A stretch of 64,000 nt of DNA, from the sequence record OR513085.1. One strand, written 5' to 3'. Made by a program: the position numbers and the translations under genes. This document shows, piece after piece, positions 40 through 35,232 of this stretch. Below the pieces are notes generated by a model. It was not told where the DNA came from. It saw only the letters and a list, made by a program, of their open reading frames with translations, and searched no databases. Within the stretch, counting starts at the first letter, position 1, and every line of letters begins with the position of its first letter.

Positions 40-110
40 CAATTTTTTAAAAATAGTTTCCCAAATGTTTTCACGTTTGGGAATTTTTGTTTATATTTGT
101 ATTATAAAAT
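40..110 (+). promoter_or_regulatory. Bacteroidota-type promoter with upstream hairpin
   Basis: TATATTTG (TAnnTTTG) at 92-99; ttcccaaa..tttgggaa hairpin; directly upstream of topo II. Confidence 0.6.
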
Positions 111-163
111 TAATCAAATTAATTGGTCTACGACCTATAATAAAACAACAATAAAATTACATA

Positions 164-2146: not shown

Positions 2147-2170
2147 TCATTTATTAACAAAAATAATCAA

Positions 2171-2200
2171 AACGAGGTACCAAAAAGTACCTCGTTTTTT
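2171..2200 (+). terminator. Rho-independent terminator
   Basis: aaacgaggtac-caaaaa-gtacctcgttt followed by T run. Confidence 0.85.
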
Positions 2201-2321
2201 CGTTTAATTATATTTCAAAATAAAAAATTTTAGGTCCTCAGAATGTCACTAAAGTATACATCTCATGCACCATTTTAAACCTTTGTAAATGTATACATAA
2301 ATTCAACACATTTTTTTAACT

Positions 2322-2666
2322 ATGGCGGATGAAACTCAAATTGTCTGGAATAACTCGTTATCCAGTCTCCCTCCCGAGCATACAAAAGTAAATGTGCGTT
2401 ACAAAGAATGGCTAAACGGCCGTGAGAAAACGTATATACGACTATGTACACTCGAAAAATTCTACAATGACCCAATGTCACATTACTTTAAATGGCTTTG
2501 GTTCTTTGTACCACCATTCCAATCCAACCAAACTTCACTTGAGCTTGTAGGTACGGAATGGTCTGTAATTGACCCTCCAGTAGGCGGCAATCGTATAGTC
2601 TTAACAAATTCCGAAGGCAAAATTTACGTCTTTGGTACAACTAACAACTTAATTTTATTGAAGTAA
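2322..2666 (+). CDS. DUF551-like module protein (paralog of 8185..8526)
   Basis: W..S..LPPE..V.V.Y, WFFxPxF and TEWS shared with 8185; ATACATAAAT late-type element at about 2293. Confidence 0.6.
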   Translation: MADETQIVWNNSLSSLPPEHTKVNVRYKEWLNGREKTYIRLCTLEKFYNDPMSHYFKWLWFFVPPFQSNQTSLELVGTEWSVIDPPVGGNRIVLTNSEGKIYVFGTTNNLILLK

Positions 2667-4231
2667 TGGCAGACATTAAACTAAATCCAAATGATCTTAG
2701 CGGCCGTCCAGTGGCAGACATTAAAAATTCTACTGATGGCGACAAGCAAAAAGTACTTGTAGTCAAAGGCACTGAATTGGAGCAATATGAAGTATCGAAA
2801 ATTATTGATAAAGCTACTGAAGGTACAGAAGCTATTGTAGACGGCAAAATTGCAGAATTTTCTCGTAACTTACCGTTTGCAGAGTCGTTCGACTACTTAG
2901 ACAATGCAAATTTACAGCATGCAAAAAGCATAAATTCATGGCTATCATCTACTGTTAGAGGTGGCGAAGATGACAATGAAAACTGGACTTGGCGTAAAAT
3001 TGAAGAGCCTCGTGAAACGTTAGGTATGTTGCTAAATGTTGCTAGAAATAACGCCGCTACTGCAGAAAAATATAATCAGACGTTATACCGAAATATAATG
3101 TTCGCTGCAAGACCTGGTATGGTTGGTAAAATTTCAATAGACTTAGTTACCGACGACAATGAATTTCAATTCATAGCATTTAAGAAAAATGATACTGGAC
3201 CTTACGAAAATATGGTTTGGCGTTCAGACACTATCAAAACTGGTGCAGGTCTATACACTGCAGATTATAGCAATGTTGGCCTAATAGTAGACAATTCTAC
3301 AATATTTGGAATAATCAACATAGGCTGGGAAAAACCTATAACAATTAAGCAAGATGATAACATTGTAGACGGTGGCGGCTGGTGCTTACGATCAGATGAC
3401 GATTCATATTCAATTAACGGGCTTGGCGTATTTTCAATGACCGTAGAAATTCATGAAATCGAAAAGGACTATGGACCAGTATTTAGGCCAGGCCAATTTG
3501 ATTTAGTGCGTTCAGTTTTTAACATTGTCAACGAACTTACAGTTAACGGAGGTATTGTTACGCATTCTACGAATTACGGTGACGTTAATGGTGACTGGGA
3601 ACCTGTGGTAGTTAGTGGAGTCGACACAGTTCTGCAAAAAATAAAAGAAAAACGTCCAGGTTTTACTGGGCAAGTTAAAATGCTACAAGTTTCAGCTAGG
3701 GCGGCGACTACTAAATCGTTCAATCTTGCAATTTATGCAAAACGATCTGACAGTGATAATTTTAACACAGTTACTATATTTAGGCATTTGCGTGCTGAAA
3801 CTGTAGGTCAATTGTTTACGTTTAAAATAGACGCTAGCTATTTGGACGATTTTGACATTTATGCAGGATTTTATAACTACTTTGACCCAAAAACTGAAAC
3901 TGTAGATATTTTGCAAGATAACTCTAAGTCAGACGTTACGTTGTACAAGTACAATATGGACACTGGCAAAATAATCGGGACATTTACTGGTAAGCCTTTG
4001 CCAATACAAATGAATACTGTAAAAGTATTAGAATCTAGCATAGTGTCTAAGCGAGACTTGGATAGAATTAACAACAGATTTTATGCGGTCGACGACAGCA
4101 TAAACGACATACGTAATTTATTACAGCAAGAAATTTGGGAAATTAACCAACGTCTGCAATCACTAGGATTCGATTATAGCAAGCGACTAATTTATAATCC
4201 TGATGGTACTATGGACTGGGTTGCTAAATAA
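2666..4231 (+). CDS. Probable virion fibre/whisker-like protein
   Basis: 521 aa; N-terminus and C-terminal coiled coil + DGTxxW end resemble 8567..9124; beta-rich middle. Confidence 0.45.
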   Translation: MADIKLNPNDLSGRPVADIKNSTDGDKQKVLVVKGTELEQYEVSKIIDKATEGTEAIVDGKIAEFSRNLPFAESFDYLDNANLQHAKSINSWLSSTVRGGEDDNENWTWRKIEEPRETLGMLLNVARNNAATAEKYNQTLYRNIMFAARPGMVGKISIDLVTDDNEFQFIAFKKNDTGPYENMVWRSDTIKTGAGLYTADYSNVGLIVDNSTIFGIINIGWEKPITIKQDDNIVDGGGWCLRSDDDSYSINGLGVFSMTVEIHEIEKDYGPVFRPGQFDLVRSVFNIVNELTVNGGIVTHSTNYGDVNGDWEPVVVSGVDTVLQKIKEKRPGFTGQVKMLQVSARAATTKSFNLAIYAKRSDSDNFNTVTIFRHLRAETVGQLFTFKIDASYLDDFDIYAGFYNYFDPKTETVDILQDNSKSDVTLYKYNMDTGKIIGTFTGKPLPIQMNTVKVLESSIVSKRDLDRINNRFYAVDDSINDIRNLLQQEIWEINQRLQSLGFDYSKRLIYNPDGTMDWVAK

Positions 4232-4238
4232 CATAAGC

Positions 4239-4270
4239 AAAGCCTGGACGTCATAACGTCCAGGCTTTTT
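4239..4270 (+). terminator. Rho-independent terminator (ACGT-core family)
   Basis: aagcctggacgt-cata-acgtccaggctt + T run. Confidence 0.9.
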
Positions 4271-4307
4271 GCGTCATTGTAGTATTTTAAACAAAACATA
4301 AAATATC

Positions 4308-4574
4308 ATGGCAGACTACAAAATCAAAAGAACTGGCGAAATGCTAAGCCTAAAAGACATTATGAAAGCGCATATAGACGGTAATGTTGCAGAAAACGCG
4401 CAGTTTGAAAGTACTGATGGCAAATTCACAATAATTCATACTTCCTCGCAAGGCTTAATATACATTAAAAATGACGGCAATTCAAATCCTCGTAACATTT
4501 ACCTTAAGCCGGCAGCCGAGTATGTTACGTTATCTAAGCTAACGTTTGAAAAAGTTTTTGTAGATTTTGATTAA
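4308..4574 (+). CDS. Hypothetical protein
   Basis: 88-aa ORF with A-rich leader. Confidence 0.6.
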   Translation: MADYKIKRTGEMLSLKDIMKAHIDGNVAENAQFESTDGKFTIIHTSSQGLIYIKNDGNSNPRNIYLKPAAEYVTLSKLTFEKVFVDFD

Positions 4575-4630
4575 AATAGTTGCAAAAATATTTTCATATG
4601 TCGTAAAATTTTAATATATTTGTATTATAA
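4573..4630 (+). promoter_or_regulatory. Promoter cassette, TATATTTG class
   Basis: aaaatagttgc..ttttcatatgtc-N12-tatatttg. Confidence 0.75.
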
Positions 4631-4651
4631 TTTAATAACAATCAATAACAC

Positions 4652-6121
4652 ATGGCAAAACGTAAAAATGTAGCTGAAGCATCTGAATTTGAACTTACTG
4701 AGTTTAACGACCAGATCAACATCACTACTTTACTTAACACTGATTATAAAGCATACGCTGGATATACTGTTTTTAACAGAGCAATTCCTTCATTAGCTGA
4801 CGGATTCAAAACTGTACAGCGAAAGATTATGTACACTGCCTTAGGCGAACTTAAAGGTAACAAACCAATTAAAGTTGCTGCTTTAGGAGGATTCGTAATG
4901 GCAAAATCACATTATGCTCACGGTGATGCTTCATTAGAATCTGCTATCGTAACAATGGGCCAAGGATTCAAACAATCATTGCCTTATTTCTTACCTGACA
5001 GTGACTTTGGTGAAATTTATACACCTCAAGCAGGTGCAGCAAGGTATATTTCAATGTACAAATCAGATGTTTTCGATTTGTTGATGAAAGATTCCAACCA
5101 ACTTATTAAGCAATACGCAGAAGGCGATGAAATCGAACCTACTCACTACTTACCAATTATCCCAACTGTACTTATCAATTCAACTGAAGGTATGGCAGTA
5201 GGATATTCATCAAACATTATCAACAAAAATCCACTAGGACTAATCGATGCTTGCATCGACTATGTCAAGACTGGTAAGCTTGATGATTCGTTAGAGTTGA
5301 TTCCTTACTTCCAAGGAGCTATAGGACGTTACGTTAACTACACAAACCATGTAGGGGACTCAAGGTTTGAACATTACGGACTTTGGGAACAAGTTAATCC
5401 TAAAATGCTTAGAGTTACAGGACTTCCTGCAGGAACTACTTTAGAAAAGTTTGAAGAGCATTTAAATTCATTGATTGATGTAGGGCAAATTTTTGACTGG
5501 GTTAACCGTTCAGAAAACAACAAAATCAATTATGAAGTTCACTTTGACAAAAACGTATTAGCAGACATCATCAAAAAAGGAACAGTACTTAACGTTCTAA
5601 AATTATTCACAAGACTTCAAGTTGATAACTTGACAATGCTGGATATCGATGGAAAAGTTAAACGTTTTGATAACGTTGCCCAAGTAATTCGTAGATTTAT
5701 TGACTGGAGAATGCCTTATGTCGAAACTCGCAGACAACTTAAAATCGACGAAATCAACAAAAAGATAAAGGCTGCTAACGATAAACTTAAATTCATTGAG
5801 TTAGTTCAGGCAGGTAAAATTGATGTTAAGTCTTTCGTTTCAAGAGCCGATGCTGCAGAGAAACTTAGCAAATTCGACCTACCTGTTGAAATGGTCGATA
5901 TCAAAATTTATTCGATATCTAAGGAGGAGGTTGACAAACTAAAGAAAAGTATTGTGGATTTACTTAAAGAGCTTAGCTATTATGAGAAATTAACTGCAAA
6001 GAAAATGTATCTGACAGATTTAACTGACTTACTTAAAGCAGTTGAAGCTAAAGGTTATCAAAGAGACGAATGCGAATACATTGTAGATAAAGTATGGCAA
6101 GCACAACTGGCTCAACAATAA
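4652..6121 (+). CDS. gp52: DNA topoisomerase II medium subunit (T4 gp52/GyrA-like)
   Basis: RAIPSLADGFKTVQRK, HYAHGDAS, catalytic AARY, IIPTVLIN..GMAVGY. Confidence 0.95.
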   Translation: MAKRKNVAEASEFELTEFNDQINITTLLNTDYKAYAGYTVFNRAIPSLADGFKTVQRKIMYTALGELKGNKPIKVAALGGFVMAKSHYAHGDASLESAIVTMGQGFKQSLPYFLPDSDFGEIYTPQAGAARYISMYKSDVFDLLMKDSNQLIKQYAEGDEIEPTHYLPIIPTVLINSTEGMAVGYSSNIINKNPLGLIDACIDYVKTGKLDDSLELIPYFQGAIGRYVNYTNHVGDSRFEHYGLWEQVNPKMLRVTGLPAGTTLEKFEEHLNSLIDVGQIFDWVNRSENNKINYEVHFDKNVLADIIKKGTVLNVLKLFTRLQVDNLTMLDIDGKVKRFDNVAQVIRRFIDWRMPYVETRRQLKIDEINKKIKAANDKLKFIELVQAGKIDVKSFVSRADAAEKLSKFDLPVEMVDIKIYSISKEEVDKLKKSIVDLLKELSYYEKLTAKKMYLTDLTDLLKAVEAKGYQRDECEYIVDKVWQAQLAQQ

Positions 6122-6162
6122 CAATAAAGTTCCAAAAAGGAGTATATGCTTTCCAGCGTGAA

Positions 6163-6348
6163 ATGACGCTGGAAATGTATCTCCACTTACTAAAGGAAAA
6201 TCCAAAGCCGCTGATCGACGACATTCAAAAGATCAGAGCCGATATTGACAGAATGCCAGAATCACACTCTGGAAACTGCAGATGTTCATGTTGCTATGCA
6301 CATCATAAATACGACTTACCACCGACAGTAGACCCTATAATTATTTAA
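6163..6348 (+). CDS. Small Cys/His-rich hypothetical protein
   Basis: Likely start 6163 inside ORF 6094..6348; CRCSCCYAHH. Confidence 0.45.
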   Translation: MTLEMYLHLLKENPKPLIDDIQKIRADIDRMPESHSGNCRCSCCYAHHKYDLPPTVDPIII

Positions 6349-6353
6349 AACTT

Positions 6354-6671
6354 ATGAAATTACCACAAAACGTAGATTCTGAATCTACGGAAGCTAAACT
6401 AGCTGAAAAGCTTGAAGCAGTAAAAACTCAAGCCAAAATTTTGCTATTACACACTGCTTTACTATTCATGCATGTTACGATAATCTGGCTAATCTATTGC
6501 TGGATAGCACCAAAAATTGTACAGTTAAGTCTGCCGGAATTTTCCTGGACTGAATTTGCATTTGCGCTTATTCTTGGTAGGTTCTTACATACAGGACTTA
6601 CATTAAAAATTGATGCAAAGAAAGCCTACGACAGATACAAAGAGCGTGAAGCTAAACGAAAGAATGAGTAA
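6354..6671 (+). CDS. Hypothetical membrane protein (2 TM)
   Basis: Two hydrophobic segments, basic C-terminus. Confidence 0.6.
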   Translation: MKLPQNVDSESTEAKLAEKLEAVKTQAKILLLHTALLFMHVTIIWLIYCWIAPKIVQLSLPEFSWTEFAFALILGRFLHTGLTLKIDAKKAYDRYKEREAKRKNE

Positions 6672-6765
6672 GTTACAACTTGGCTAGATTAAAAAGTAAG
6701 CTAAGCTTGCGCATTTACTACTAAATGCGTATAATAAAAACATAAAAATAAAACAACACACGACA

Positions 6766-7086
6766 ATGCAAAATACACAACAAGAAGATAACGTAGTTGA
6801 CGTACAAATCGACAGTAAAGAATTACTTAACGAACTTGAACAACTTACTGGACAAAGAATCGTTTCTGAGGAATACCAAAAGGACCAGGCTCAGCTTTTA
6901 GAATACATGGAGCAAAACAAATTGTATGGCAGAAGCACAATGAACAGGCAGCAAAAACGTAATCACTTCTTGAAAGCTGATCTTGGCGGAGATAAGTCTA
7001 ACCAGCAAAGAGCTCAGGCTAAAAAAGTTGCCAAAGTAAAAGCTAAATCCAAAGCTGCTAAGAAAGCTAGGAAAAAGCAAAGATAA
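6766..7086 (+). CDS. Hypothetical protein with Lys/Ala-rich basic tail
   Basis: MNRQQKR motif; KAKSKAAKKARKKQR tail. Confidence 0.6.
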   Translation: MQNTQQEDNVVDVQIDSKELLNELEQLTGQRIVSEEYQKDQAQLLEYMEQNKLYGRSTMNRQQKRNHFLKADLGGDKSNQQRAQAKKVAKVKAKSKAAKKARKKQR

Positions 7087-7117
7087 CGACCATGATTTTT
7101 GATTTTTAATATTATTG

Positions 7118-7155
7118 ATTTTATCCCAAGTGTCTTCGATGCTTGGGATTTTTGC
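7118..7155 (+). terminator. Rho-independent terminator
   Basis: atcccaagtgtc-ttc-gatgcttgggat + T run. Confidence 0.8.
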
Positions 7156-7214
7156 GTTTACTATAATATGCGAAACATTTATACATACACTAACTAATAT
7201 TTTACAGCAAAATT

Positions 7215-7535
7215 ATGGCAGATAAAACATTTGAATGGTCAGACCCGGCAACTAAATTGCCTAAAGTAGGCGAAGCTATTATTGTAGAATTGATACCTCA
7301 ACTAGGCTATCCTGCAGACTACAAAATAAGATTTGAAGCACAATATGTTAATGTATTTTCAGATCATGCTACGTTCAATCATAGCAATTACTTTTTCAAT
7401 ACTAACCAAACTGACGAGGAAAAGACTTGGCCAGTAGATCAAGTTAGACAATGGTCGCCTTGGTTTGAAGGTTGGGAGAACGCAGTAGAATCCGACTTAG
7501 CGCCAGCTAAAGCAAAACGTACTAATAAAAAATAA
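7215..7535 (+). CDS. DUF551-like standalone protein
   Basis: EWSDPATKLPKVGE..IIV; DQVRQWSPWFEGW. Confidence 0.6.
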   Translation: MADKTFEWSDPATKLPKVGEAIIVELIPQLGYPADYKIRFEAQYVNVFSDHATFNHSNYFFNTNQTDEEKTWPVDQVRQWSPWFEGWENAVESDLAPAKAKRTNKK

Positions 7536-7541
7536 CAACAT

Positions 7542-7868
7542 ATGGCAACTATAACTTGGAAGCAAGTTTCCGCAGAACAACCGGAACCTAACACAAAAAT
7601 ACTAATAAAAGCTAAATTTAGTCAATACGAATCTTGGAATGACGTTAAGATTGGCAATAACGAATGTCAGTCTGTAGTAGCTAAAGATTTTGAAGAGCCG
7701 CTAGAAGCAGTACTATCTGGAGAATACAATGACAATGCGACACTAACTAATTTTACTCCACTCTGGAAGTTATTCAAAAGTAGACATGGAGTTTCTGCAT
7801 TTGAATTGGACCAAATTACTGAATGGGCTGAGTGGTTCCCTGGATGGGATTTAGAGGACCAAGCTTAA
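7542..7868 (+). CDS. DUF551-like standalone protein
   Basis: TWKQVSAEQPEPNTKILIKA; GVSAFELDQITEWAEWF. Confidence 0.6.
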   Translation: MATITWKQVSAEQPEPNTKILIKAKFSQYESWNDVKIGNNECQSVVAKDFEEPLEAVLSGEYNDNATLTNFTPLWKLFKSRHGVSAFELDQITEWAEWFPGWDLEDQA

Positions 7869-7895
7869 ACTTAAAAATTTTTAAAATATTTTAAT

Positions 7896-8168
7896 ATGGC
7901 AGAAATAAAATGGATTAAGACTGGTGATCGTATGCCTAAAAAGGACACTTTAGTGCTAATTAAAGCTATATTTTATACTCACAACGGCATGCCTTACGAA
8001 AGAATTGTTGAAGCTAGGCTTATCGACAAACTAAACGATCATGGCTCAGTAGCTTGGAACACTACGACTTTGTGGCAAATGCCGACTGGTTTGGCAGGAG
8101 TTTCTGCATTTGAATATGACAAAATTACAGAATGGGCTGAGTGGTTCAAGGATTGGCAATCAAACTAA
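7896..8168 (+). CDS. DUF551-like standalone protein
   Basis: KWIKTGDRMPKKDTLVLIKA; GVSAFEYDKITEWAEWF. Confidence 0.65.
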   Translation: MAEIKWIKTGDRMPKKDTLVLIKAIFYTHNGMPYERIVEARLIDKLNDHGSVAWNTTTLWQMPTGLAGVSAFEYDKITEWAEWFKDWQSN

Positions 8169-8184
8169 ACAACAAATTTTAAAT

Positions 8185-8526
8185 ATGGCAACAAAATACG
8201 ACGTTAACGACAGGCTACCTCAGGAAAATCGTTTAGTAAGCTTAACTTACACTGATGAATACGGAAAGGTACGTACACGTAACGCATACATGGGTAGAAG
8301 CTATCAAAACATCGGTAAAGACTCTTATACAATTCAGTGGTTCTTCAACCCGCAATTTGACTTTGTATCAGGCGCTAACTTAGCAGACACTGAATGGTCT
8401 TTCTTACCTGGTGACGAGTACAAAGAATGGTTTGCATTATCTAGCAAAGATGGGTCTTTCTTAACATTCAAGGATGTATCAGGTGGCGAATGCTTACTAG
8501 TGCAGGCAGAAGTTCCTGCACCTTAA
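8185..8526 (+). CDS. DUF551-like module protein (paralog of 2322..2666)
   Basis: Likely start 8185 in ORF 8110..8526; DRLPQENRLVSLTY, WFFNPQF, TEWS. Confidence 0.6.
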   Translation: MATKYDVNDRLPQENRLVSLTYTDEYGKVRTRNAYMGRSYQNIGKDSYTIQWFFNPQFDFVSGANLADTEWSFLPGDEYKEWFALSSKDGSFLTFKDVSGGECLLVQAEVPAP

Positions 8527-8566
8527 TACAAAACTTTTACAACACAAAAACAAATTTATTTTTATT

Positions 8567-9124
8567 ATGGCTGATGAAACATTAAACAAATTGCCAGTTG
8601 GCCAATTGCCTGCAGCTACGAGTGCTACAGGAATTAACGTAGTAGTTCACAAAGACGGAGTACTTATGCAATCGGCAGTTAACGTTATTACGTCTGCAGT
8701 TAGTACAGAAATTACTACGTTAAAAACTGATGTAGCTACCGCAAAAGCTGATGCTGCACAGGCTAAAATCGACGGTGCTACTGCTAGAGCTGATCTTGAC
8801 GTTTTCAAGCAATCTGAATTTGCTCCAGTTAAAGCAGAATCTGCAGCTACTAAAACTCAAGCAAACACTAACAAAACTGATATTACTGCGCTTAAGACTG
8901 ACAATACTGCAAATAAAACTGATATCGGTACGCTAAAAACTGACGTTGGCACTTTGAAAACTGACAACACTGCAAATAAAGCAGACATTGGTACGCTAAA
9001 AACTGACAATACTAAAAACAAAGCAGATATTGCTAAACTTAACACTACGTTAACAAAGGATGGCAAAATTGTAGTTTTGTCTTTTGAGGCAGATGGTACT
9101 GTTAAGTGGACTGCAGGAACGTAA
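8567..9124 (+). CDS. Coiled-coil fibre/whisker-like protein with heptad repeats
   Basis: Repeats LKTDNTANKTDIGT; C-terminal DGTVKW; N-terminus like 2666. Confidence 0.55.
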   Translation: MADETLNKLPVGQLPAATSATGINVVVHKDGVLMQSAVNVITSAVSTEITTLKTDVATAKADAAQAKIDGATARADLDVFKQSEFAPVKAESAATKTQANTNKTDITALKTDNTANKTDIGTLKTDVGTLKTDNTANKADIGTLKTDNTKNKADIAKLNTTLTKDGKIVVLSFEADGTVKWTAGT

Positions 9125-9153
9125 CGAACGTAACGAACGTAACAACAAATAAC

Positions 9154-9183
9154 GCCAGGACGTTCTGAACGTCCTGGCTTTTT
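9154..9183 (+). terminator. Rho-independent terminator (ACGT-core family)
   Basis: gccaggacgtt-ctg-aacgtcctggc + T run; preceded by a (gtaacgaac) tandem at 9121-9146. Confidence 0.9.
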
Positions 9184-9212
9184 ACTTAATAACCAACACA
9201 AACTGATATTAA

Positions 9213-10790
9213 ATGAATAATAACGAAATTAGAGCTGATGTTGAATGGTTCAAATTTCCTAAGTTCCCTCCTGAAAAAGTTAACGTTTACGTAAAGTGGC
9301 AATATCCAAACGATACTGAAATTCATATTGACGTTTGCTATCTTTACCGAGCATATCCAAAAATGACCAAGGATGGCTACAAAAAACTATTTTGGTTCGT
9401 AGACAAAAAGTCAAATCATGAAGCTATTCCTATGGAACACGTTATCGAATGGGCTTATGAAAACGAGGACGACGATGACCCGGAAATTCCTGAAAATGAT
9501 ATGCTTGGTACGATTTATGAATTTGGTCGTAACAACTGGCAACCAGGATTTGATGGCGAATGGATTGGCAAATGGGGTGTCTTTTGGGATTACGATTCTA
9601 CTAACGCGCTGATAGTCAGAGAAATTGTAGAAGATGGCGGCGACTTAATGTACGACATTAACCACAGTTCTGCATTAATTACTTACGACTACACTATTAC
9701 ATTACGTAATTTTGAAAATAGCAGCATAATGCTATGGGGTAACAGATATGTCAAACAATACGATGGTCATACCGAAATACGAACGTTTTTGACATGCAAA
9801 TACATCGCTGATACAGATACATACGAAATACGATGGGCTGATGAGAAATATTCGTTAATAAGTCTAAATGCCGCAGTCGTACAAGTGCCTGCAAGTGAAT
9901 ATTTGCATACTGATGAATGGCAGTTAACTATAGAGTCTAAACGTACTGCATATTATGTTGCTGTTAAGAACTTACGTACTAACAAAACTTACGTTGTATA
10001 GGATGGTCCTAATTATTGGACAAAGCCGCATAGATGCTATTTTATTTTAAAGCAAATAAAATCGCTACCTGCAGAAGAGCGCCCTGCATTAGTAGACGTA
10101 AAATATCATTCAAAACAGGAGACTTTTGTACCATTTTTGATTTACGCAGATATGTCAGCATTCGGTGCTAACGTAGATGGTTCATATGCATTAGGCGGTT
10201 GGGGTTCTTGCTTTAAAGACGCTGTACTATATGGCGGATGCACTGCAACAAACCAAATGATATATGACTATTCTAAAGAAATTGCATTAATTAAACCAGG
10301 TGCATTAATTATAGCAGGCGGTGCATATCCTCATATGCTTATGCCTGGCTGGGAAGGTGATGAAATGATGAGAGCTATGCAATGGTTTAAGACAGATTAT
10401 CCTGATCAGCTAATAACGTTTCTTAAAGTTGCAATATACGGCAAAGTATATCCTAACGCAGCATCGCAGGTTCAATGTACACTAATGTTTCAACCTGAGC
10501 CAGGAACGCCGGAATACGATGTGCTTGAGGATTTTAAGCCGTACAATTATTGCATGGCTCCTGGTACTGAAGACGATCCTACTATACGAACAGCATTCTC
10601 TGAACATGACAATCCTGAAGCTCCGCAAATGTATCAAGGTTTACTTACAGATGTTGGCGTAACATATTTGACAGTAAAGGCAGACGAAAAATGGGGCGAG
10701 ACTAGAAAACGTTTTATACGTAAGTACGTAACTAAGTGGTTGACTGAACGTAACTTGCCATTAGACAAACTTGAAAAATACATAAAATAA
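9213..10790 (+). CDS. DUF551-like + beta-sandwich + SGNH-like protein interrupted by one in-frame TAG (readthrough gene or pseudogene)
   Basis: ORFs 9213..10001 and 10137..10790 share a frame with only TAG 9999-10001 between them; the 525-aa joined product aligns end to end with 10804..12402. Confidence 0.75.
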
Positions 10791-10803
10791 CAAACATTTT
10801 TAA

Positions 10804-12402
10804 ATGAGCAGAGAAATAATTGACATTAAGGATGCAGTTTGGTACACGCTTGAAGAAAAACTGCCGAAAGAAAATTCGACAGTTTTCATTAAGTGGAAAC
10901 ATGCAAAAGATGATGCTGAACTTCATCATTTGTGCAGATACGGCAAAACGTATCAGTCTATGACGCTTAACCGCAAGAATATGTTTTGGAAACTTAGCAC
11001 ACCAGATAATTGGGATGCTTTTGAAACTGATGACGTTTTGCAATGGGCATATGCATACTCGGATGAAGAGGACCCAATTATACCGAACTTAGAGCCTATC
11101 GGCGTACTTTATGATTTTAACAAAGACAATAAGTTTGAAGGTTCCGCCGATTCGTTTTATCATAACGCTCTAATAGTTGATGAAGATGGCTATCTTGTAA
11201 AAGACCCAAACTATAATAGCTGGTTCATTGCAGTTACTTGCAAAAAACATTCAGGCTTATTCGAGTTTAAGTACACTATAGAAGTTAACGACTTAATAAA
11301 CAACGAATTTGAATTGTACAGTACTGGGTATAATCCTAGACGTTTTGGCCACACTGACAATACTATTAGATTTGAAGCTTATCGTATGTGGTCAGGTGCA
11401 GATAAAATATTATTCAGACTAGTAGATAATAGCACTAATACTACGTACAATTCAGATGATGCATTGCAGTCTAGTGATTTTGACGAAGAACGTTTTTACA
11501 GAATTACCGTAGAATCTACTTTCGATTGGTTCAAAGTTTATATCGTTGACACTGAAACTAATGCAAAATATTCGTTGTACGATGGACCTAACAAATTTAC
11601 AGATTCGCATTATTTAAAAGTTAAGTATAACGGTAACGTTGACGTAGATGGTGTTTATAAAATTCGCCAGCTTAAATTTGAATCTAACGCAAATAAGTTT
11701 TTGCCTTTCTTAATGTTTACTGACTATTCAGGTTTTGGCGTAGACGTTAATACAAAAATAAACGTTAAAGAAAATGGTTGGAATAGTTGTTACACATTGT
11801 CAGAGCCGTATGGTGGCGGATATTTGGACATTACTAAGCTAACACATTTAATTGACGAAATTGCTTTACGTAAACCAGGAACTCTAATTTTAGGTGCAGG
11901 TGCGTACAGAGGAGTATTTAAACCAGATGATCCTGTGCTAGTAGAAATGTTTGAAAAGGAAATTGGCCAAGCTCTAGACAAATTAGAAGCTGCGATAGGC
12001 AAAGAAAACATTGCAGTTATCGACGTTGCAGTTTATGAATCAATGTACCCTGATTCAAAATGGGCCAAGGACTATACTAGAAGAGTTTTGCTAGGTGAGC
12101 GTGGTTATGACGACTTAGGTGTAAGTCCTTATGATGAACTTAAAGACCCTAATTCGCCAGTCGACATTATTCAACAAAGATTTAATGGAACTCTGCCATC
12201 TGACGATAACTTACATGTTTGGGGTAAACTTAATGACGTTGGTATTTCGTACTTAAATGCTAAAGTTGAACAAAGCAATGCACTATACAACAACATGCGT
12301 ACTAGATACGTAAATTATGTTAAGCGTTGGTTAACTGAACATGACTTAGACTCTAATGACTATCAAAAGTACTTAGCGCACTACTACAAAAACGCTAGAT
12401 AA
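10804..12402 (+). CDS. DUF551-like + beta-sandwich + degenerate SGNH-like protein (possible virion appendage)
   Basis: VWYTLEEKLPKE..QWAY N-terminus; beta-rich middle; FTDYSGFG, KPGTLILGAGAY, LNDVG resemble SGNH blocks. Confidence 0.5.
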   Translation: MSREIIDIKDAVWYTLEEKLPKENSTVFIKWKHAKDDAELHHLCRYGKTYQSMTLNRKNMFWKLSTPDNWDAFETDDVLQWAYAYSDEEDPIIPNLEPIGVLYDFNKDNKFEGSADSFYHNALIVDEDGYLVKDPNYNSWFIAVTCKKHSGLFEFKYTIEVNDLINNEFELYSTGYNPRRFGHTDNTIRFEAYRMWSGADKILFRLVDNSTNTTYNSDDALQSSDFDEERFYRITVESTFDWFKVYIVDTETNAKYSLYDGPNKFTDSHYLKVKYNGNVDVDGVYKIRQLKFESNANKFLPFLMFTDYSGFGVDVNTKINVKENGWNSCYTLSEPYGGGYLDITKLTHLIDEIALRKPGTLILGAGAYRGVFKPDDPVLVEMFEKEIGQALDKLEAAIGKENIAVIDVAVYESMYPDSKWAKDYTRRVLLGERGYDDLGVSPYDELKDPNSPVDIIQQRFNGTLPSDDNLHVWGKLNDVGISYLNAKVEQSNALYNNMRTRYVNYVKRWLTEHDLDSNDYQKYLAHYYKNAR

Positions 12403-12409
12403 AGCTTTG

Positions 12410-12441
12410 AAGCCAGAACGTTCGTAACGTTCTGGCTTTTT
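12410..12441 (+). terminator. Rho-independent terminator (ACGT-core family)
   Basis: aagccagaacgtt-cgt-aacgttctggctt + T run. Confidence 0.9.
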
Positions 12442-12486: not shown

Positions 12487-12533
12487 AGTAAAACTTTTCC
12501 ATAGGAATACATAAACTACAAATATTTCCAAAC

Positions 12534-14078
12534 ATGGCATTTAACGTAATTACGTTGATGGACGCTAACGTTCTTGTTGAGAAAACGCGAAACATCGACA
12601 TACTTTCAGATAACAAACTTTTCAAATTAAATACAACTCATGGCGAGCAAGTTTGGTCGTCTAATAAAGCAACTAACAACTCAGAAGCTTCAACGTTCAC
12701 AAGAGAGTACATTAGACCTGTTTTAGTTGGCAAAAATTCTGATGGGTTTAGACCTGTAGCGCCTACGGAGATTGTAGCAGACGGAAACGCTCAGCTACTT
12801 TGCAACATACATAACGTTTTTATTTCGTCGTTTGACTTTAAAACGTTGTATTCTAATGCATACTCTGCTACATTGGAAATCTACCAAGTTTACGACGGTA
12901 AGGAAATTATACTAAGCTCAAATGTCTTGGCTTTGATGGACTTCAGGCTTAGTAAATTTGACCTTGAATATGCAAACAGATTCTATTCAACATATTGCCC
13001 AGTTCAGGTAGTAGACTTGACTTCAATGTTACTATCTAAAAATCCTGACCATATTGAGTTAGTTTCACAAATAATCGATGTGCCTAGCAGTCAAATTAAC
13101 GAGGCTTTGCTAAGTAATATCCACTACCGCTTTGCATACATTGACGAATCTACTATAACAGTTCCGCCTACTACAGCGTATTTTGAATTTGACATTACTG
13201 AGATTGTTTCACGTCCAGAAAGCCCTGCATCTTGGGCACTTGAAGGTGACTTAAATGTACTAGTTACTAGGTCAGGTCGTAGAATACAAATTGGCTTAGA
13301 TCAGTCAAATCCTGACTTAATGAACACTCTAACGCAAATTGTCGATAGCGTAGAATTGCTAAGCATAACGTATGACGTAACGTTTACATCGTACAAAAGT
13401 ACAGTAGACCCAAATGATTTTGAATATCAGGGAGTACATTACGAAGAAATTGGCAAATATAGCATTACTTGCGCTAATACATTCGAGCCAGTAGAGCCTG
13501 TTACGTTACTACCAGATATTGCAGATAGCGCGGACTTACTAAGCATTAACGTACTTATGCAAATAACATCATCACGTAATACAATTTCTTTAAGCAAAAC
13601 GTATAACCAATTGTTCCTTGGTACTGACTTATCTGCACTAAAGAACATAGTCTACAACATTCAAGCAGAGCAATTCAGAATCAACAATGTTATCGAAACT
13701 ACTCAGAACGTTGTAACGTTCAACAATACTAGCGGAGTTAACACGATAGCTCAACGTAATAGCTTACAATTTGTAACGCTAAAAGCTGTACATATCAATG
13801 ACTTCGACAGCGGCCAGCTTTCAACTGATGCTACAGAAACTACTCTTTACTTACGAACTACGCCAATGATGTTCGCAGTTAAGTTCATTTCAGATGTAGA
13901 CTTCGACCTACGTAAATACGAGGCTATCGAAATTACGTACAATGCAAGGTCACAAAAACCAACAAAAATTGAAAAAGACGTACTATATTTCCAACTAGGC
14001 TGGCAAGATGCTACCGAAATAGCTGTAGTTATTAACGGTGTTGTAGCAACTGTGCTAGGCGCACAAAAAGCATTCTGA
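12534..14078 (+). CDS. Hypothetical protein, probably structural
   Basis: 514 aa, beta-rich; ATACATAAAC late-type element upstream. Confidence 0.45.
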   Translation: MAFNVITLMDANVLVEKTRNIDILSDNKLFKLNTTHGEQVWSSNKATNNSEASTFTREYIRPVLVGKNSDGFRPVAPTEIVADGNAQLLCNIHNVFISSFDFKTLYSNAYSATLEIYQVYDGKEIILSSNVLALMDFRLSKFDLEYANRFYSTYCPVQVVDLTSMLLSKNPDHIELVSQIIDVPSSQINEALLSNIHYRFAYIDESTITVPPTTAYFEFDITEIVSRPESPASWALEGDLNVLVTRSGRRIQIGLDQSNPDLMNTLTQIVDSVELLSITYDVTFTSYKSTVDPNDFEYQGVHYEEIGKYSITCANTFEPVEPVTLLPDIADSADLLSINVLMQITSSRNTISLSKTYNQLFLGTDLSALKNIVYNIQAEQFRINNVIETTQNVVTFNNTSGVNTIAQRNSLQFVTLKAVHINDFDSGQLSTDATETTLYLRTTPMMFAVKFISDVDFDLRKYEAIEITYNARSQKPTKIEKDVLYFQLGWQDATEIAVVINGVVATVLGAQKAF

Positions 14079-14317: not shown

Positions 14318-14395
14318 ATGCAGCTATGAAAATAGTTGCATTTTTTGTGCATAAAATTTTCACATGTCAAAAACTTTTCTTATATTTGTAATAAC
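14318..14395 (+). promoter_or_regulatory. Hairpin + promoter cassette, TATATTTG class
   Basis: atgcagctat-gaaa-atagttgcat, then ttttcacatgtc-N12-tatatttg (14381-14388). Confidence 0.75.
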
Positions 14396-14414
14396 AATAA
14401 TAAAATAAAACATA

Positions 14415-15035
14415 ATGAAGCAATTAACTAAAGCAATATTTGACCTAGCGCAACCGATTTATGGAAGGCTTAACAAACGTACATTTGTAAATTTTGAAGT
14501 AGGCGACCTTGTAGATGAATCCAGACAGCAAGGCATGCATGGATATGACATAGACTTTGACGTAATACTTTCAAACGGCAAACCTTTACAACGTGAATAT
14601 GTTTGGACATTAGAACAAAAACAATCTTTGATTTTGTCAATGCTTAAAGGAATTAAGTTGCCGCAATTCCACTTCGCAATATTTAAGGAATCTGACAAAG
14701 CTAAAAATCCTTATGACCGTAGACTATTCAAAGTTATCGACGGCAAACAAAGACTTTCTGCAATTAAGGAATTTGTTGAAAATAAGTATGCTATATTCAT
14801 TGGCAATGAAACGTATTATTTTTCCGATTTTGATAGCGAAATGGAATATAAAATAAGAACTTACACAATTGATTGTAGCGTGTATTATGAACATAAGTAC
14901 GTAAATGAGCCAAAGCATAACACATACTTAACTGACAGAGAATTAGTAGAATGGTTTATTCTAGTTAACTGGGCAGGTGTTCAGCAAGAGGCCGAACATA
15001 TGTTTAATTTACGTGAATCTTTAAAAACAAAATAA
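14415..15035 (+). CDS. DUF262 (ParB-superfamily, GmrS-like) protein
   Basis: LQREYVWTLEQKQSLILSMLKGIKLP and VIDGKQRL. Confidence 0.85.
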   Translation: MKQLTKAIFDLAQPIYGRLNKRTFVNFEVGDLVDESRQQGMHGYDIDFDVILSNGKPLQREYVWTLEQKQSLILSMLKGIKLPQFHFAIFKESDKAKNPYDRRLFKVIDGKQRLSAIKEFVENKYAIFIGNETYYFSDFDSEMEYKIRTYTIDCSVYYEHKYVNEPKHNTYLTDRELVEWFILVNWAGVQQEAEHMFNLRESLKTK

Positions 15036-15847: not shown

Positions 15848-18800
15848 ATGTCGTTAAAAGATGTAAAAATCCTATTGAATGCTGGCTTCTCGGCTAACAA
15901 ACTTATAGGAGAAACTAATGGTGACGAGTTGTTTGAGCTAATAAAAAGCTCGGCTTATGGTAGCGACTTACCAAAAGAGCGTAGACCTACAATATCACAG
16001 TCCTCTACAAATCATAGACCTTTAAACGATACTAACGAATACCTTGGATGGAACGGACTTCAGCCAATTGACATTGACATACGTAACAAAACTTGTGCTT
16101 CGTTAGTCAAAAAGATTTTTGAGAAAACATTGTACAAATATCATTGGTGTCATTCTATTGCACTTTCAACATCCGGGTCAGGTCTTCACGTTTACACGTA
16201 CACTGAACCAATCTCAACTTTTACTGCAGAAGCTTCCATGGCAGCATCAATGTTACGTGAGTATTACTTAGATGCTTACGAATATAAACTTATGGTTTTA
16301 TGGAAGGCTTTGCACTTAGCGTATGACGTTATGTTGGAGCTTGGTGTTGATGAAGAAGTTGCAAAATGCTGCCATCCTATTGACCATGGTCATGTAGACC
16401 CTGCAGGAAAACCTTTGGATGTTTTGGACGTTACGTCTTCGAGAATATCACAACCACTGATTATTACAGCAGACCCGTCAATTTCAAAAAACGAAAACAA
16501 TTTTGTTTTTATGGACTTGATGTTACCTGATGTTCTTACATTCTATGCTGGCGTTGATGAAAAGTATCGCATGAACATACTTAAAGAACAATTTGACAGG
16601 ATTCGTAACCGTTACGGAGTTTCGTTAGTCAATGGTAAAGTAGTTTATGCAGATAACCACGAATTCGACAATTCATTCAAGGACAAAATTAAGTTTGAGG
16701 AAGGCGAAATTAAAGACTTGTACAACCAAGCTAATCCAATGTACTACGACAACACTAAACGTTATCGTATGGCGTATACGTTGGCTTATCTTTTTGATGT
16801 CAAGGAATACAATTCTGATAGGTACAACCAAGTAGAAGGCATTTTCCTTAAACTTTGTTCAGGTAACCCAAAGTTCCAGCGTGAAAAGTTCCAGTATTCA
16901 AATGTTTTTAAGTCTGCAGTAGATCGTAACATTAGAGGAAATTGTCCTTGTATATGGTCGGCAGTTAAAGAACTACGAGATCAGCATGGATTTAATATTG
17001 TCATTGAAGTTAATGAAGAGGAAGTTCGTGAACAAATTGAAAATGCAAACACTACAGACTTAATTACGGAGTACATTTTGGAACCTGTTAAGTACAATGA
17101 CTTCTTTAGACTTAACTATACTCATGAATATCACTTAAAAAACAATGAGTACATTGGAACTTACAAAGATTCGTTGCTTGGAATCCTTAAACATGGCATT
17201 AATATGCTTGATGCGCCTCCAGGATTTGGTAAAACTGAATTTATCAAAGCAGCATCTGCAGAAAAGCGTATAATGCTAGTAGTTCCGTATACATCGATTC
17301 TGCAATCAAAAATTGAACCATCAGACCTTGGATTTGAATGCTTCTACGGAGATAAGCCTGTTAATTTTGCAGGAGCAAATCACGTAGCTTTGACTTTCGA
17401 TAAGTTCACAAAAATCGACATTGACGAAGTTTCAATGATGTTCGATATCGTAGCTATTGACGAATGTCACTTATTGACAATGTCGTCATATAGAGGCGTA
17501 GTTCCTGCAGATGTTATCGACAAAGCAAATGCACTTAAAACGGTAACGATTATCATGACAGGTACTCACATATCTGAGCATTTGTTTATGAACCTTCAAA
17601 CTGCAATTAAGTTTACAAGACCTGCATCAACACGTAACAAAAATATGAACTTTGTTATGTGTATGTCTAATGGCGACAAACTAACAAAGATTGCCATGCA
17701 TATTGCGAATGCTTTGAAGTCTGGCAAAAAGATTTTGTTTCCGACAAACAAAGGTACTGAATATCAAGAAAGGCTAACTGCAGCAACTAGAGCCTTTTAT
17801 GGTTCACAAATTAAGTCAAGATACTACAAACGCGAGAATCACTTAGCGGACTTTGTTGATGACATTAACTTGAAAGGCACTACAACCGATGTAGATTTAT
17901 TGTTTTGCTCCAATTATCTTTCGGTTGGCGTAGATATCAATGACACTACAGAATTCGACGTTATTTATGATGAACAATTTACTGCACAGGAAATCGAACA
18001 GTTTAATTGTAGATTACGTAAGCTAGACATTGAGTCGTTTTATTACTTCTCTAAAGTAGATGCTTCTGGAATGCCTAAAAACATAACATTGTATGAGGAC
18101 CTTTCGTTGGACTTAACACAGGATGAAGCTCTGTCATTCAATGATATTCAACAATTGCACCTACAGACTGATACATCCGCAAATCTTTGGGACTTCTTTA
18201 AATATGCATTCACTATGCCTTATTTCATAAAGGACCATGTATCTGGAGAAGTTCATGTACATAACACTTGTTTTAGATTGCATAAATTTGAAGAAAAGTG
18301 GAGAGAATGGGCTATTCAACTTAATGTTGTAGCTACGTTTTTAAGCTATTATGGTTACACTTGTGATGTAGTTCAAAACATTGCCGAAAACGAAGATGCT
18401 ATACAAACTGCAGTTGCTGCAGCCAAGGAAGCTGCCGGCGAATATCGTAAAAAACGTAATGACTTAACTGCACAATTCCTTAAATTAGCTAAAGCAGATG
18501 ACAAAACATTTGCGTTCATTATGGATGTTAAGTTTGAGGATATCGTAGACTCTGATACGTTCGACATTGTTAAACGTAAAGGTAAGCCTACGTTACTTAT
18601 TGCAGACTCTAGCATTTTTACAAACTGGCGTAGAATTATGCGATTGCTTTCGCGTTATTACATACGCGAGACTATTTTTGACATTATTGAACAATATTGT
18701 TTTGATGGTGAAACTTACAATATTTCAGCGTCAAACAGACTTATTGATGCTTTACGAGTTATTCAAAATACCGAGGATGAAAACTTAGTAGAGTCTAATA

Positions 18801-26202: not shown

Positions 26203-26213
26203 TTTTTACACAA

Positions 26214-26290
26214 AAGGCAACTATTTTTAAAAATAGTTGCCTTTTTATTTTTATATGTCGTAAAATTTTCTTATATTTGTATTAATAAAA
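26214..26290 (+). promoter_or_regulatory. Hairpin + promoter cassette, TATATTTG class
   Basis: aaaggcaactatttt-taaaaatagttgccttt; atgtc-N12-tatatttg (26272-26279). Confidence 0.75.
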
Positions 26291-26301
26291 ATAGCAAAAT
26301 C

Positions 26302-30789: not shown

Positions 30790-30812
30790 TAGCATTAACT
30801 ACTTTGAATTTT

Positions 30813-30915
30813 AAAATGCCACTTTGCATTACTATGACGGAAACGTTAAAGTTATGTTAAAGTGGCATTTTTGTTTTCATATGTCAAAAATTATGCTTAT
30901 ATTTACATATAATTA
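30813..30915 (+). promoter_or_regulatory. Long hairpin + promoter cassette, TATATTTA class
   Basis: 59-nt stem-loop with GAAA tetraloop; ttttcatatgtc-N12-tatattta (30898-30905). Confidence 0.7.
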
Positions 30916-30931
30916 AAAAATCAAAAACAAA

Positions 30932-32856: not shown

Positions 32857-32860
32857 AATG

Positions 32861-32947: not shown

Positions 32948-32963
32948 GATAAAATCAAACATT

Positions 32964-35221: not shown

Positions 35222-35232
35222 TCAAAAACATC

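Follow-up and report, generated by a model that had tools for sequence, protein, structure and literature searches.

A lineage-specific family of seven DUF551-like domains beside fibre-like genes in Chryseobacterium phage MA9V-2

Introduction

What does a small, tryptophan-rich domain do in seven proteins of a single phage, when in some it stands alone and in others it heads a larger protein? The question is raised by Chryseobacterium phage MA9V-2 (OR513085.1), a published lytic jumbo myovirus with a 218.5-kb genome, in which replication genes (topoisomerase, clamp loader) surround the locus that encodes these proteins. An earlier note on this DNA had likened the domain to DUF551 (PF04448) and proposed that it acts as a docking adaptor within an undescribed system. 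The last term is too strong, because the literature already describes DUF551 as a portable domain (PMC10834534), and fusions of it to nucleotide enzymes and regulators are known. The bona fide DUF551 proteins have been described in early (exo-xis) and cryptic-prophage gene clusters rather than in structural modules. Many phages and prophages encode DUF551, which so far has neither an assigned function nor a solved structure, and the neighbours of the MA9V-2 copies are informative: they include a fibre-like protein co-inherited with its module, fusions to a predicted lectin fold and, at the start of the units, a motif that morphogenesis genes also have. For the related phage MA9V-1, the published description offers an SDS-PAGE gel for the proteins and micrographs without head fibres.

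Here, we ask whether the seven proteins share one domain, how this domain relates to DUF551, how its genes are organized and which role best fits these observations. The window that we analysed comprises nt 1-64000 of OR513085.1, and whole-genome scans took in all 218,539 nt of MA9V-2. All coordinates refer to the window, and all features lie on the + strand unless stated otherwise.

Results

Seven copies of one domain

The seven open reading frames, at the starts noted earlier, match the GenBank CDSs MA9V2_002, 009, 010, 011, 012, 014 and 016, and their N-termini have in common a unit of 85-104 aa. On alignment, a Trp lies near the start of the unit in six of the seven (it is missing only in MA9V2_012), an invariant Pro occupies an (L/M/F/Q)P step that is followed by a hydrophobic strand, and a central LW/FW step and an (E/Q)W step with an invariant Trp complete the pattern. 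Written as a regular expression, the pattern first proposed for the unit matches 6/7 members and two of 384 other ORFs. The modules contain 3.5-6.8% Trp, compared with 1.06% genome-wide, and all of them are acidic (pI 4.4-6.1); pairwise identity between subgroups is just 12-24%, and the alignment proved too divergent to yield a degenerate pattern for locus scans.

Leave-group-out HMMs were scored against about 700 six-frame ORFs, and in nearly every test the held-out members were recovered above these ORFs at E values of 1e-5 to 4e-3. The exception was the HMM built without the MA9V2_014/016 subgroup, which recovers MA9V2_016 (2.7e-5) and misses MA9V2_014 and the fusion protein of MA9V-1. Conversely, with a profile made from the two fused members and their MA9V-1 relative, all nine other members outrank any unrelated ORF. 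Over the 218,539-nt genome the family HMM finds exactly seven copies, the next ORF lying at E = 2.5. The shared N-terminal unit of the earlier note is thus confirmed by the alignment, the leave-group-out tests and the genome-wide search. Its use both alone (MA9V2_009, 010 and 011) and as the N-terminal part of larger proteins (MA9V2_016) is also supported. The same note had divided the family into three standalone copies, two with a short beta tail and two with about 440 aa of cargo; the first two classes stand (the beta-tailed copies being MA9V2_002 and 012), but only MA9V2_016 has a cargo of ~440 aa in one ORF.

Beyond these proteins the family is narrow. A full-library profile search gathered 14 proteins and not the large DUF551 family, a tblastn search against 50,697 phage records matched MA9V-1 and MA9V-2 alone, and word-indexed protein searches with MA9V2_011, the MA9V2_016 cargo and the relative P0014 returned nothing beyond the queries themselves. 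The seven genes represent the expansion, within this lineage, of a single small all-beta domain that is acidic and rich in Trp. The four copies that are conserved in MA9V-1 are all under purifying selection, with dN/dS values of 0.06-0.32 between orthologues of the two phages.

A remote relationship to DUF551

Against Pfam, MA9V2_011 alone matches DUF551, at 21.1 bits (E = 5.7e-4) and thus below the gathering cutoff of 22 bits; the other six members have no DUF551 match at E <= 1. The relative P0014 scores 16 bits and a positive control, ORF44 of Pseudomonas phage YA3, scores 30.9 bits. An hhalign comparison of the 13-member family with four DUF551 proteins, a small set from two lineages, gave P = 6.4e-4 and a probability of 28%, and in both the relaxed local and the global alignment the match is collinear over the full length, from N-motif to C-motif. 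Reciprocal HMM scores against four bona fide DUF551 proteins range from 1e-5 to 7e-4 per sequence. None of the PHROGs matched by the bona fide DUF551 proteins, all of which are labelled 'unknown function', is matched by the seven.

The AF2 model of MA9V2_011 (pLDDT 86.7) is all-beta with six strands. When it was searched against BFVD with Foldseek, the top three matches and 22 of the top 50 were named DUF551, with probabilities of up to 1.0, TM scores of 0.5-0.6 and a best E value of 1.8e-3. The MA9V2_011 module is therefore predicted to have the DUF551 fold, in a comparison of predicted with predicted structures because the PDB search returned no solved DUF551 structure. A fold search with the module model against the PDB, which includes many solved phage particles, matched no solved structure, and a PDB sequence search with the module profile gave nothing significant. 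The proposed likeness to DUF551 accordingly stands for the fold, and in sequence it is weak (one sub-cutoff Pfam match and hhalign at P = 6e-4); the module is a distant, enlarged relative to which the DUF551 label applies remotely.

Compared with YfdS of E. coli CPS-53, the C-terminal region of Ea22 V2 and YA3 ORF44, the unit is likewise a small phage domain that begins with a Trp, an (L/M)P step and a hydrophobic strand, ends with a (V)T-x-W step and occurs both alone and fused to other parts. Nevertheless, there are distinguishable differences. The first is size: the Pfam model has 68 positions, whereas the copies here span 85-104 aa, with long insertions in the middle hairpins. The second is that the fusions place the module at the N-terminus, with a partner part of predicted lectin fold. 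The third is that seven copies occur in one lytic jumbo phage, after a motif shared with morphogenesis genes.

Organization of the three units

The copies fall in three units bounded by terminator-like hairpins, which hold one module with MA9V2_003, four modules with MA9V2_013, and two paralogues composed of module, lectin-like sandwich and alpha/beta domain.

Upstream of the first unit, a hairpin after the topoisomerase B-subunit gene (2169..2198) closes the preceding unit. An ATACATA-type promoter-like motif (2292..2302) lies 28 nt before the start of MA9V2_002 (2322..2666), a protein of 114 aa in which the DUF551-like module (aa 1-~87) is followed by a beta tail of ~25 aa. Its stop overlaps the start of MA9V2_003 (2666..4231; 521 aa), the partner without a family match, which we call fibre-like on its terminal motifs and context only; PDB sequence searches with MA9V2_003 and with its family profile gave nothing significant. 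The unit ends with a hairpin at 4239..4268, which the scan placed on the - strand, its stem being palindromic. Within the genome, a C-terminal hairpin motif, ..DG(T/S)..W, is found in the ORFs MA9V2_003 and 013 only. A PDB profile search with this tail returned just propeller-blade hairpins of repeat proteins; likeness to the trimerising end of T4 fibritin is unsupported, because fibritin was absent from the results.

The second unit begins after a hairpin at 7123..7149, with an ATACATA-type promoter-like motif (7180..7190) 33 nt before MA9V2_009. Three standalone modules follow: MA9V2_009 (7215..7535; 106 aa), the fastest-evolving copy, with 63% amino-acid identity to its MA9V-1 orthologue and a dN/dS of 0.32; MA9V2_010 (7542..7868; 108 aa), which has a longer middle insertion and a dN/dS of 0.07; and MA9V2_011 (7896..8168; 90 aa), the sole member with a Pfam DUF551 match. 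MA9V2_012 (8185..8526; 113 aa) adds a beta tail of ~30 aa to the module and lies directly 5' of MA9V2_013 (8567..9124; 185 aa), a coiled-coil, fibre-like protein that matches PHROG 19577 ('minor head protein') at E = 1.6e-15 and tail-fibre PHROGs weakly. A further hairpin (9154..9178) ends the unit. Both beta-tailed modules are thus found directly 5' of a fibre-like protein.

In the third unit, a paralogue of MA9V2_016 occupies one frame (9213..10790) with a single in-frame stop and no frameshift; the annotation splits it into two CDSs, MA9V2_014 and 015. We analysed the two pieces apart, not reading through the stop; the N-terminal piece comprises the module and a lectin-like part and the C-terminal piece an alpha/beta domain. 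An ATACATA-type motif (10778..10787) lies 25 nt before MA9V2_016, which begins with the DUF551-like module (aa 1-92; 10804..11079). The full-length model of this protein is poor (pLDDT 49.9), and therefore only the middle sandwich was used (aa ~130-300; 11191..11703; pLDDT 60-83), which is predicted to be a concanavalin-like beta-sandwich of the lectin/glucanase type. In Foldseek it matched 212 PDB chains at E <= 1e-3, with galectin-8, soybean agglutinin (a legume lectin), GH16 and a GH43 C-domain at the top (E ~3e-6, target TM ~0.5). This part of the cargo is thus modelled with a concanavalin-like lectin/glucanase fold, and its sugar binding is putative. The remainder (aa ~300-532; 11704..12402) is an alpha/beta domain without a family match and with a low-confidence model, common to MA9V2_015 and MA9V1_225 of MA9V-1; PDB sequence searches with MA9V2_016 and with the profile of this C-domain gave nothing significant. 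As a candidate SGNH-type hydrolase the C-domain was rejected, showing no likeness to the annotated SGNH protein of the phage and no family match. P0016 and P0017 (56 aa), which cluster with MA9V1_225, proved to be unrelated sequences. The two fused proteins and that of MA9V-1 are paralogues (24-29% identical) with one shared cargo architecture, so that the 'interchangeable cargo' of the earlier note was overstated.

A hairpin follows MA9V2_016 (12409..12439), and an ATACATA-type motif (12507..12516) lies 26 nt before MA9V2_017 (12534..14078; 514 aa), a conserved downstream neighbour with no module and no family match. It is 98% identical in MA9V-1 and 55-58% identical in the contigs L005 and L006, and forms the constant boundary of the variable region. 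Scans of IMG/VR and JGI metagenomes for relatives of MA9V2_017 found none.

Upstream motif and comparison among relatives

The modules had been described as lying with fibre-like genes behind late-type elements. The adjacency holds, and the motif is common to morphogenesis genes; by themselves, the two motifs first quoted, found at 2293 and 7181, are not significant (three found in the window against 1.5 expected). In the form TACATA[AC][ACT], the motif occurs 85 times genome-wide on both strands; 19 annotated starts, including those of several morphogenesis genes, have it 20-35 nt upstream. The ATACATA type also precedes the neck protein, the prohead protease, the DNA end protector, a tape-measure-like gene and several giant ORFs. 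It is unlike the host-type early promoter class of MA9V-2, for which the module units have no clear example. The class may nonetheless be middle rather than late, since another motif lies upstream of the genes for the major capsid protein and the tail sheath.

The module family is known so far from four genomes or contigs (MA9V-2, MA9V-1, L005 and L006). Gene order in the region is conserved in all four, while its copy number and content vary and the flanks are 55-98% identical. In MA9V-2, MA9V-1 and L005, the coiled-coil protein follows a module of the MA9V2_012 type. MA9V2_002 and 003 are jointly absent from MA9V-1; in the metagenomic relative L006 a module of the first type is again followed by a protein of the second, at another position, and three MA9V2_003 paralogues occur in that contig. 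One frameshift splits the MA9V2_002-type gene in a relative.

Discussion

The best reading of this locus, on circumstantial grounds, is that the domain serves as a docking or adaptor unit for late, fibre-associated accessory proteins, which we hold tentatively and rate somewhat below an even chance. In such a scheme the module would be a protein-protein docking unit of late-expressed accessory proteins, and at the N-terminus of the lectin-bearing proteins it would tether them to a shared partner; the likeliest candidates are the fibre-like proteins from this locus or a site on the virion. Tethering would place the putative sugar-binding part on an appendage; in jumbo phages, concanavalin-fold lectins have been reported on fibres and virion parts (PMC7824862). 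The beta-tailed free copies, MA9V2_002 and 012, could then be dedicated partners of the fibre-like protein encoded next, as adaptors or assembly helpers. In favour of the docking role are the joint recurrence and loss of MA9V2_002 and 003, the place of the MA9V2_012-type module ahead of the coiled-coil protein, the tail motif confined to MA9V2_003 and 013, the PHROG matches of MA9V2_013, the lectin-fold cargo and the upstream motif. Against it are the MA9V-1 micrographs without head fibres, a module fold that matched nothing in the PDB, the early and cryptic-prophage settings of bona fide DUF551 proteins, the surrounding replication genes and the different motif before the capsid and sheath genes. 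The stronger version, in which DUF551-type domains in general dock phage appendages and a plug-in set fixes the lectin-bearing proteins to MA9V2_003 and 013 as scaffolds, seems unlikely. No support was found for standalone copies acting as 'caps or decoys'.

A docking role would follow the logic of the N-terminal anchor domains of receptor-binding proteins (particle-binding and branching domains of tailspikes and fibres), where a conserved N-terminal unit precedes a carbohydrate-binding part in a region that differs between close relatives. Here a module stands before a part of predicted lectin fold, but the cargo architecture is the same in the three known fused proteins. Neither in Pfam, PHROGs and the PDB sequence search nor in Foldseek was a sequence or fold relation to such domains found, and here, in contrast, most copies are free-standing small proteins.

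A different division of labour would make the free modules non-structural chaperones for the folding or oligomerisation of the adjacent fibre-like proteins, with the fused module as an intramolecular helper. The small genes are co-transcribed and translationally coupled with fibre-like genes and a module/partner pair is conserved, much as for tail-fibre assembly chaperones, and helpers that stay outside the particle would account for the absence of the fold from solved virion structures. However, no match to known fibre-chaperone families was obtained in Pfam or PHROGs, the domain further occurs in fusion with large proteins, and the presence of four distinct modules ahead of a single short coiled-coil protein is left unexplained. 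Fibre chaperones are usually encoded downstream of their client, and the module genes lie upstream of theirs. We judge a purely helping role to be improbable.

It also appears doubtful that the domain binds a cytoplasmic host or phage target, the array supplying diversifying takeover or counter-defence factors. DUF551 proteins have been described in regions of early or accessory genes, and fused to nucleotide enzymes and regulators; in MA9V-2, replication genes surround the locus, the modules are all acidic, and the tandem paralogues vary in copy number among close relatives, all of which would suit an intracellular task. On the other hand, PADLOC models gave no match, the units have no clear early promoter class and carry a motif common to neck and prohead genes, and most copies are under purifying selection rather than rapid diversification. 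As part of such a host-directed set, the lectin and alpha/beta cargo might act on a cell-envelope precursor inside the cell, which is similarly unlikely; coiled-coil or fibre-like neighbours and lectin-fold cargo fit an extracellular role better.

That the copies share only ancestry and have drifted to unrelated roles or are decaying, in a coincidental neighbourhood, would agree with the in-frame stop in one paralogue, the frameshift in a relative's MA9V2_002-type gene and the 12-24% identity between subgroups, but is very unlikely given the dN/dS of 0.06-0.32 for the four copies with MA9V-1 orthologues, the gene order kept in four genomes and the joint inheritance of a module with its partner.

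If the docking role is true, it would give a first function to a widespread phage domain and a pointer to the wider DUF551 family, and would reveal the way in which jumbo phages of Bacteroidota equip their appendages with sugar-binding parts. If it is false, the locus is still a clear case of a paralogue array specific to one lineage.

Phage genome and module family

The window is 100% identical to nt 1–64000 of OR513085.1, the linear 218,539 nt genome of Chryseobacterium phage MA9V-2, a lytic myovirus infecting C. indologenes MA9 (PMC13414440). Seven ORFs had been claimed in an earlier note to begin with a common Trp-rich unit, and all were found at the positions claimed: MA9V2_002, 009, 010, 011, 012, 014 and 016, starting at 2322, 7215, 7542, 7896, 8185, 9213 and 10804. 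GenBank labels each of the seven 'hypothetical protein'. The clade was sampled through the four genomes or contigs known, namely MA9V-2, its sister phage MA9V-1 (OR050627.1; ~86% DNA identity across part of the region) and the metagenomic contigs L005 and L006.

In the alignment, the common unit spans the first 85–104 residues of the seven ORFs. It has a Trp close to its start (six of seven; lacking in _012), an (L/M/F/Q)P step with an invariant Pro followed by an alternating hydrophobic strand, an LW/FW step in the centre and a closing (E/Q)W step in which the Trp is invariant. The modules are acidic (pI 4.4–6.1) and contain 3.5–6.8% Trp, compared with 1.06% in the ORFs of the genome. Pairwise BLAST connects them in a chain, strongly for _014/_016 (3e-22), _010/_011 (4e-18) and _009/_011 (8e-7) and more weakly for _002/_014 (5e-5) and _002/_012 (4e-4). 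When subgroups were left out of the HMM in turn, with ~700 six-frame ORFs of the window and the MA9V-1 locus as background, the left-out subgroups ranked first (E 1e-5 to 4e-3; unrelated ORFs at least 0.5). The exception was the HMM lacking the _014/_016 subgroup, which found _016 (2.7e-5) and left _014 and the MA9V-1 fusion protein at noise level. A profile of the fused members only ranked nine of nine other members above every unrelated ORF, and the family HMM recovered exactly the seven from the whole genome (1,555 ORF segments), with a next-best E of 2.5. In view of the leave-out and genome-wide HMMs and the Trp content, the module observation is therefore real; the seven-member unit, also borne out by the alignment, is a family and not a chance pattern.

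Relation to DUF551

The earlier label 'DUF551-like' holds for the predicted fold and, more tentatively, for a remote sequence likeness, but not for formal membership. Only _011 matched PF04448 (21.1 bits, E 5.7e-4), slightly below the 22-bit Pfam cutoff, and the Pfam search gave no match for the other six, so that by Pfam's own rule the module is not a DUF551 member. No match was obtained for the modules in PHROGs either, whereas bona fide DUF551 proteins match PHROGs 924, 60, 7704 and 31114, none of which has an assigned function. In a search of 1.84 billion representative proteins, the seven-member profile did not recover the large DUF551 family at E <= 1e-3; its 14 matches comprised family members or their MA9V-1 orthologues (seven), the new small proteins P0008, P0009, P0010 and P0014, and three large repetitive proteins that are apparently spurious.

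As DUF551 controls, Pseudomonas phage YA3 ORF44 (Pfam 5e-7) and three Salmonella phage proteins were obtained via accessions in papers and tblastn. Profile–profile comparison of the module family with these four gave P = 6.4e-4, the N-terminal and C-terminal motifs aligning collinearly, and reciprocal HMM scoring gave 1e-5 to 7e-4 per sequence for four of four. At the level of profiles this hints at the proposed kinship, which stays below the Pfam cutoff. For _011, AF2 was given the seven-sequence alignment as input; its model was confident (pLDDT 86.7, pTM 0.74) and predicts a six-stranded all-beta domain. Among predicted viral structures, the top three and 22 of the 50 best matches to the model carry the name 'DUF551 domain-containing protein' (probability up to 1.0, TM 0.5–0.6, best E 1.8e-3), which agrees with the structural relation proposed; nothing matched in the PDB (best E 0.4). 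Taken as predicted, the module is a remote, enlarged DUF551 relative of the same fold, at the limit of sequence detection.

DUF551 has already been called a portable domain that occurs both alone and fused (PMC10834534), as does the module here, and for this reason the idea of its use 'alone and as tag' is not a new one. What is new is a branch divergent enough for family models to miss, its seven-fold expansion restricted to 10 kb of a single lytic jumbo phage genome, its N-terminal fusion to a lectin-fold part, and the way it is consistently paired with fibre-like genes, under a motif that morphogenesis genes also carry.

Fused proteins

Two proteins had been credited with ~440 aa of cargo, yet only _016 (10804–12402) carries it within one ORF. 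The second, at 9213–10790, is an _016 paralogue that keeps to a single frame, broken once by an in-frame stop and without any frameshift; its annotation gives two CDS (_014 and _015). The window contains no tRNA genes and therefore no suppressor tRNA. Both share one architecture with MA9V1_225, the 474-aa fused protein of MA9V-1, at 24–30% identity; the idea of 'different cargo domains' is therefore not borne out, and the cargo is a single type in paralogous copies. Searches of phage records, protein sets and PDB sequences detected no relatives of the cargo beyond these three.

The full-length AF2 model of _016 is poor (pLDDT 49.9). Residues ~150–295 are modelled as a beta-sandwich (pLDDT 60–83) that matches galectins, legume lectins, GH16, the GH43 C-domain and PL7 at E ~3e-6, which is a predicted concanavalin-like lectin/glucanase fold. 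The C-terminal alpha/beta domain matched no family and has several positions invariant across the three copies.

Gene units and relatives

Terminator-like hairpins delimit three units in a locus surrounded by replication genes: _002 with _003, the five genes from _009 to _013, and _016 together with its interrupted paralogue. The beta-tailed modules _002 and _012 are exactly those directly upstream of the fibre-like genes _003 (2666–4231), whose start is overlapped by the _002 stop, and _013 (8567–9124). The coiled-coil protein _013 matches the 'minor head protein' family PHROG 19577 at 1.6e-15 and has weak matches among the tail-fibre PHROGs; _003 (521 aa) matched no family in family searches or the PDB sequence search. 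Otherwise unrelated, the _003 family and _013 both end in a C-terminal hairpin motif, a hydrophobic strand leading into ..DG(T/S)..W (window 4139–4228 and 9032–9121), an ending found in none of the remaining ORFs of the genome. It is kept in three _003 paralogues of L006 (6697–6786, 8260–8349 and 9884–9973), with one substitution in one copy. A PDB profile search with the hairpin returned propeller-blade hairpins only.

In MA9V-1, _009 to _012 have orthologues as four free modules, alongside the coiled-coil protein and one fused protein; the _002/_003 pair is absent. L005 carries, in this order, two modules (one _012-type with tail), a 200-aa coiled-coil protein and a homologue of _017 (12534–14078), and L006 a _002-type module, three _003-type paralogues directly after it, the free module P0009 and a _017 homologue. 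The _002-type/_003-type pair lies between two topoisomerase genes in MA9V-2 and behind both in L006; since its site differs and both genes are missing together from MA9V-1, they travel together. The _002-type gene of L006 (4851–5208), which precedes the first _003-type gene, is divided between two frames by one frameshift, a break that is either genuine or an error of assembly.

Among the relatives, the flanks (_017, _021 and topoisomerase) are 55–98% identical, and the content between them varies. The dN/dS values between MA9V-1 and MA9V-2 are 0.32 (_009), 0.07 (_010), 0.15 (_011) and 0.06 (_012), and these four genes are therefore maintained by selection. MA9V2_021 (15848–19495; 1,215 aa) is 64–65% identical in both metagenomic relatives; its sole match is a weak helicase PHROG (1e-6), and a ACACATAAAT variant of the ATACATA-type motif lies upstream.

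Promoter-like motifs

A very clear early class combines a host-type Bacteroidota -7 box with a conserved upstream element before topoisomerase, helicase, sigma-factor and other genes. It is sharply conserved (TATATTTG/A at -7 and, ~20 nt upstream, TTTTCA(C/T)ATGTC(A/G)AAA), and mostly follows a terminator hairpin (window 84–163, 4575–4651, 14343–14414, 26203–26301, 30790–30931, 32857–32963, 35100–35232, 43972–44144, 49649–49812, 60589–60695, 60906–60964 and 62250–62343). This early class is absent from the module units.

An ATACATA-type motif lies 25–33 nt upstream of the _002, _009, _016 and _017 starts. The late-type elements claimed for the module genes are not significant within the window (three found, 1.5 expected; reached by 19 of 100 shuffles), but genome-wide a motif common to morphogenesis genes emerges: 19 of the 85 occurrences of TACATA[AC][ACT] on both strands sit 20–35 nt before an annotated start, against about one expected by a rough estimate. 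Genes behind these 19 include those for the neck protein and prohead protease, a tape-measure-like gene (PHROG 4372), a 2,367-aa ORF and further giant ORFs; the DNA end protector gene is preceded by a variant that differs in one base. Co-regulation of the module units with morphogenesis genes, as a middle or late class, is therefore plausible. The tail sheath and major capsid genes differ, having in common a second non-early motif upstream, TATA(A/T)ATAATTTAAC (window 41073–41151 for the tail sheath; genome 170603–170817, L014 603–817, for the major capsid). As this motif does not belong to the ATACATA class, there may be two classes of post-early promoter in the phage. The annotation lists two sigma-factor-like genes (window 62344–63507 and genome 157215–157622).

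Possible function

Our best, though tentative, reading of the module is a protein–protein docking unit, a possible rather than a probable role. As the N-terminal part of the lectin-bearing proteins, whose sandwich might bind sugars, it would attach these to a partner they share, for which the fibre-like proteins encoded in the locus or a site on the virion are the likeliest candidates; each of the tailed free copies _002 and _012 would serve specifically the fibre-like protein encoded next. Homology, fold class, gene order, joint inheritance, selection and the common motif are shown by the analysis, while binding, location in the virion and sugar binding are inferred. Against this stand the MA9V-1 micrographs, in which head fibres were not seen, unlike in the distant relatives PTm1 and PTm5, and the module fold, which has no PDB match, solved particles included; the MA9V-1 virion protein record is an SDS-PAGE gel only. 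That the modules are assembly helpers only, with no place in the particle, is unlikely. Just as unlikely is a role as intracellular host-directed factors; in its favour, the usual home of DUF551 is in early or accessory phage regions and this locus sits amid replication genes, both of which also count against docking, and against it, the module units share their motif with morphogenesis genes. That the seven copies have no common function is quite improbable beside the selection on _009 to _012 and the pairing with fibre-like genes.

Other loci

MA9V2_019 (window 14415–15035), with an early-type promoter upstream, encodes a GmrSD_N (ParB/DUF262-like) domain (Pfam 5e-13, PHROG 1583 9e-28) and lacks the nuclease half. 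Elsewhere (L013 29314–35537; genome 149314–155537), the annotation divides the family-B DNA polymerase into two separate CDS with three genes in between, one of which encodes a TnpB-family RNA-guided endonuclease (genome 153006–154172).
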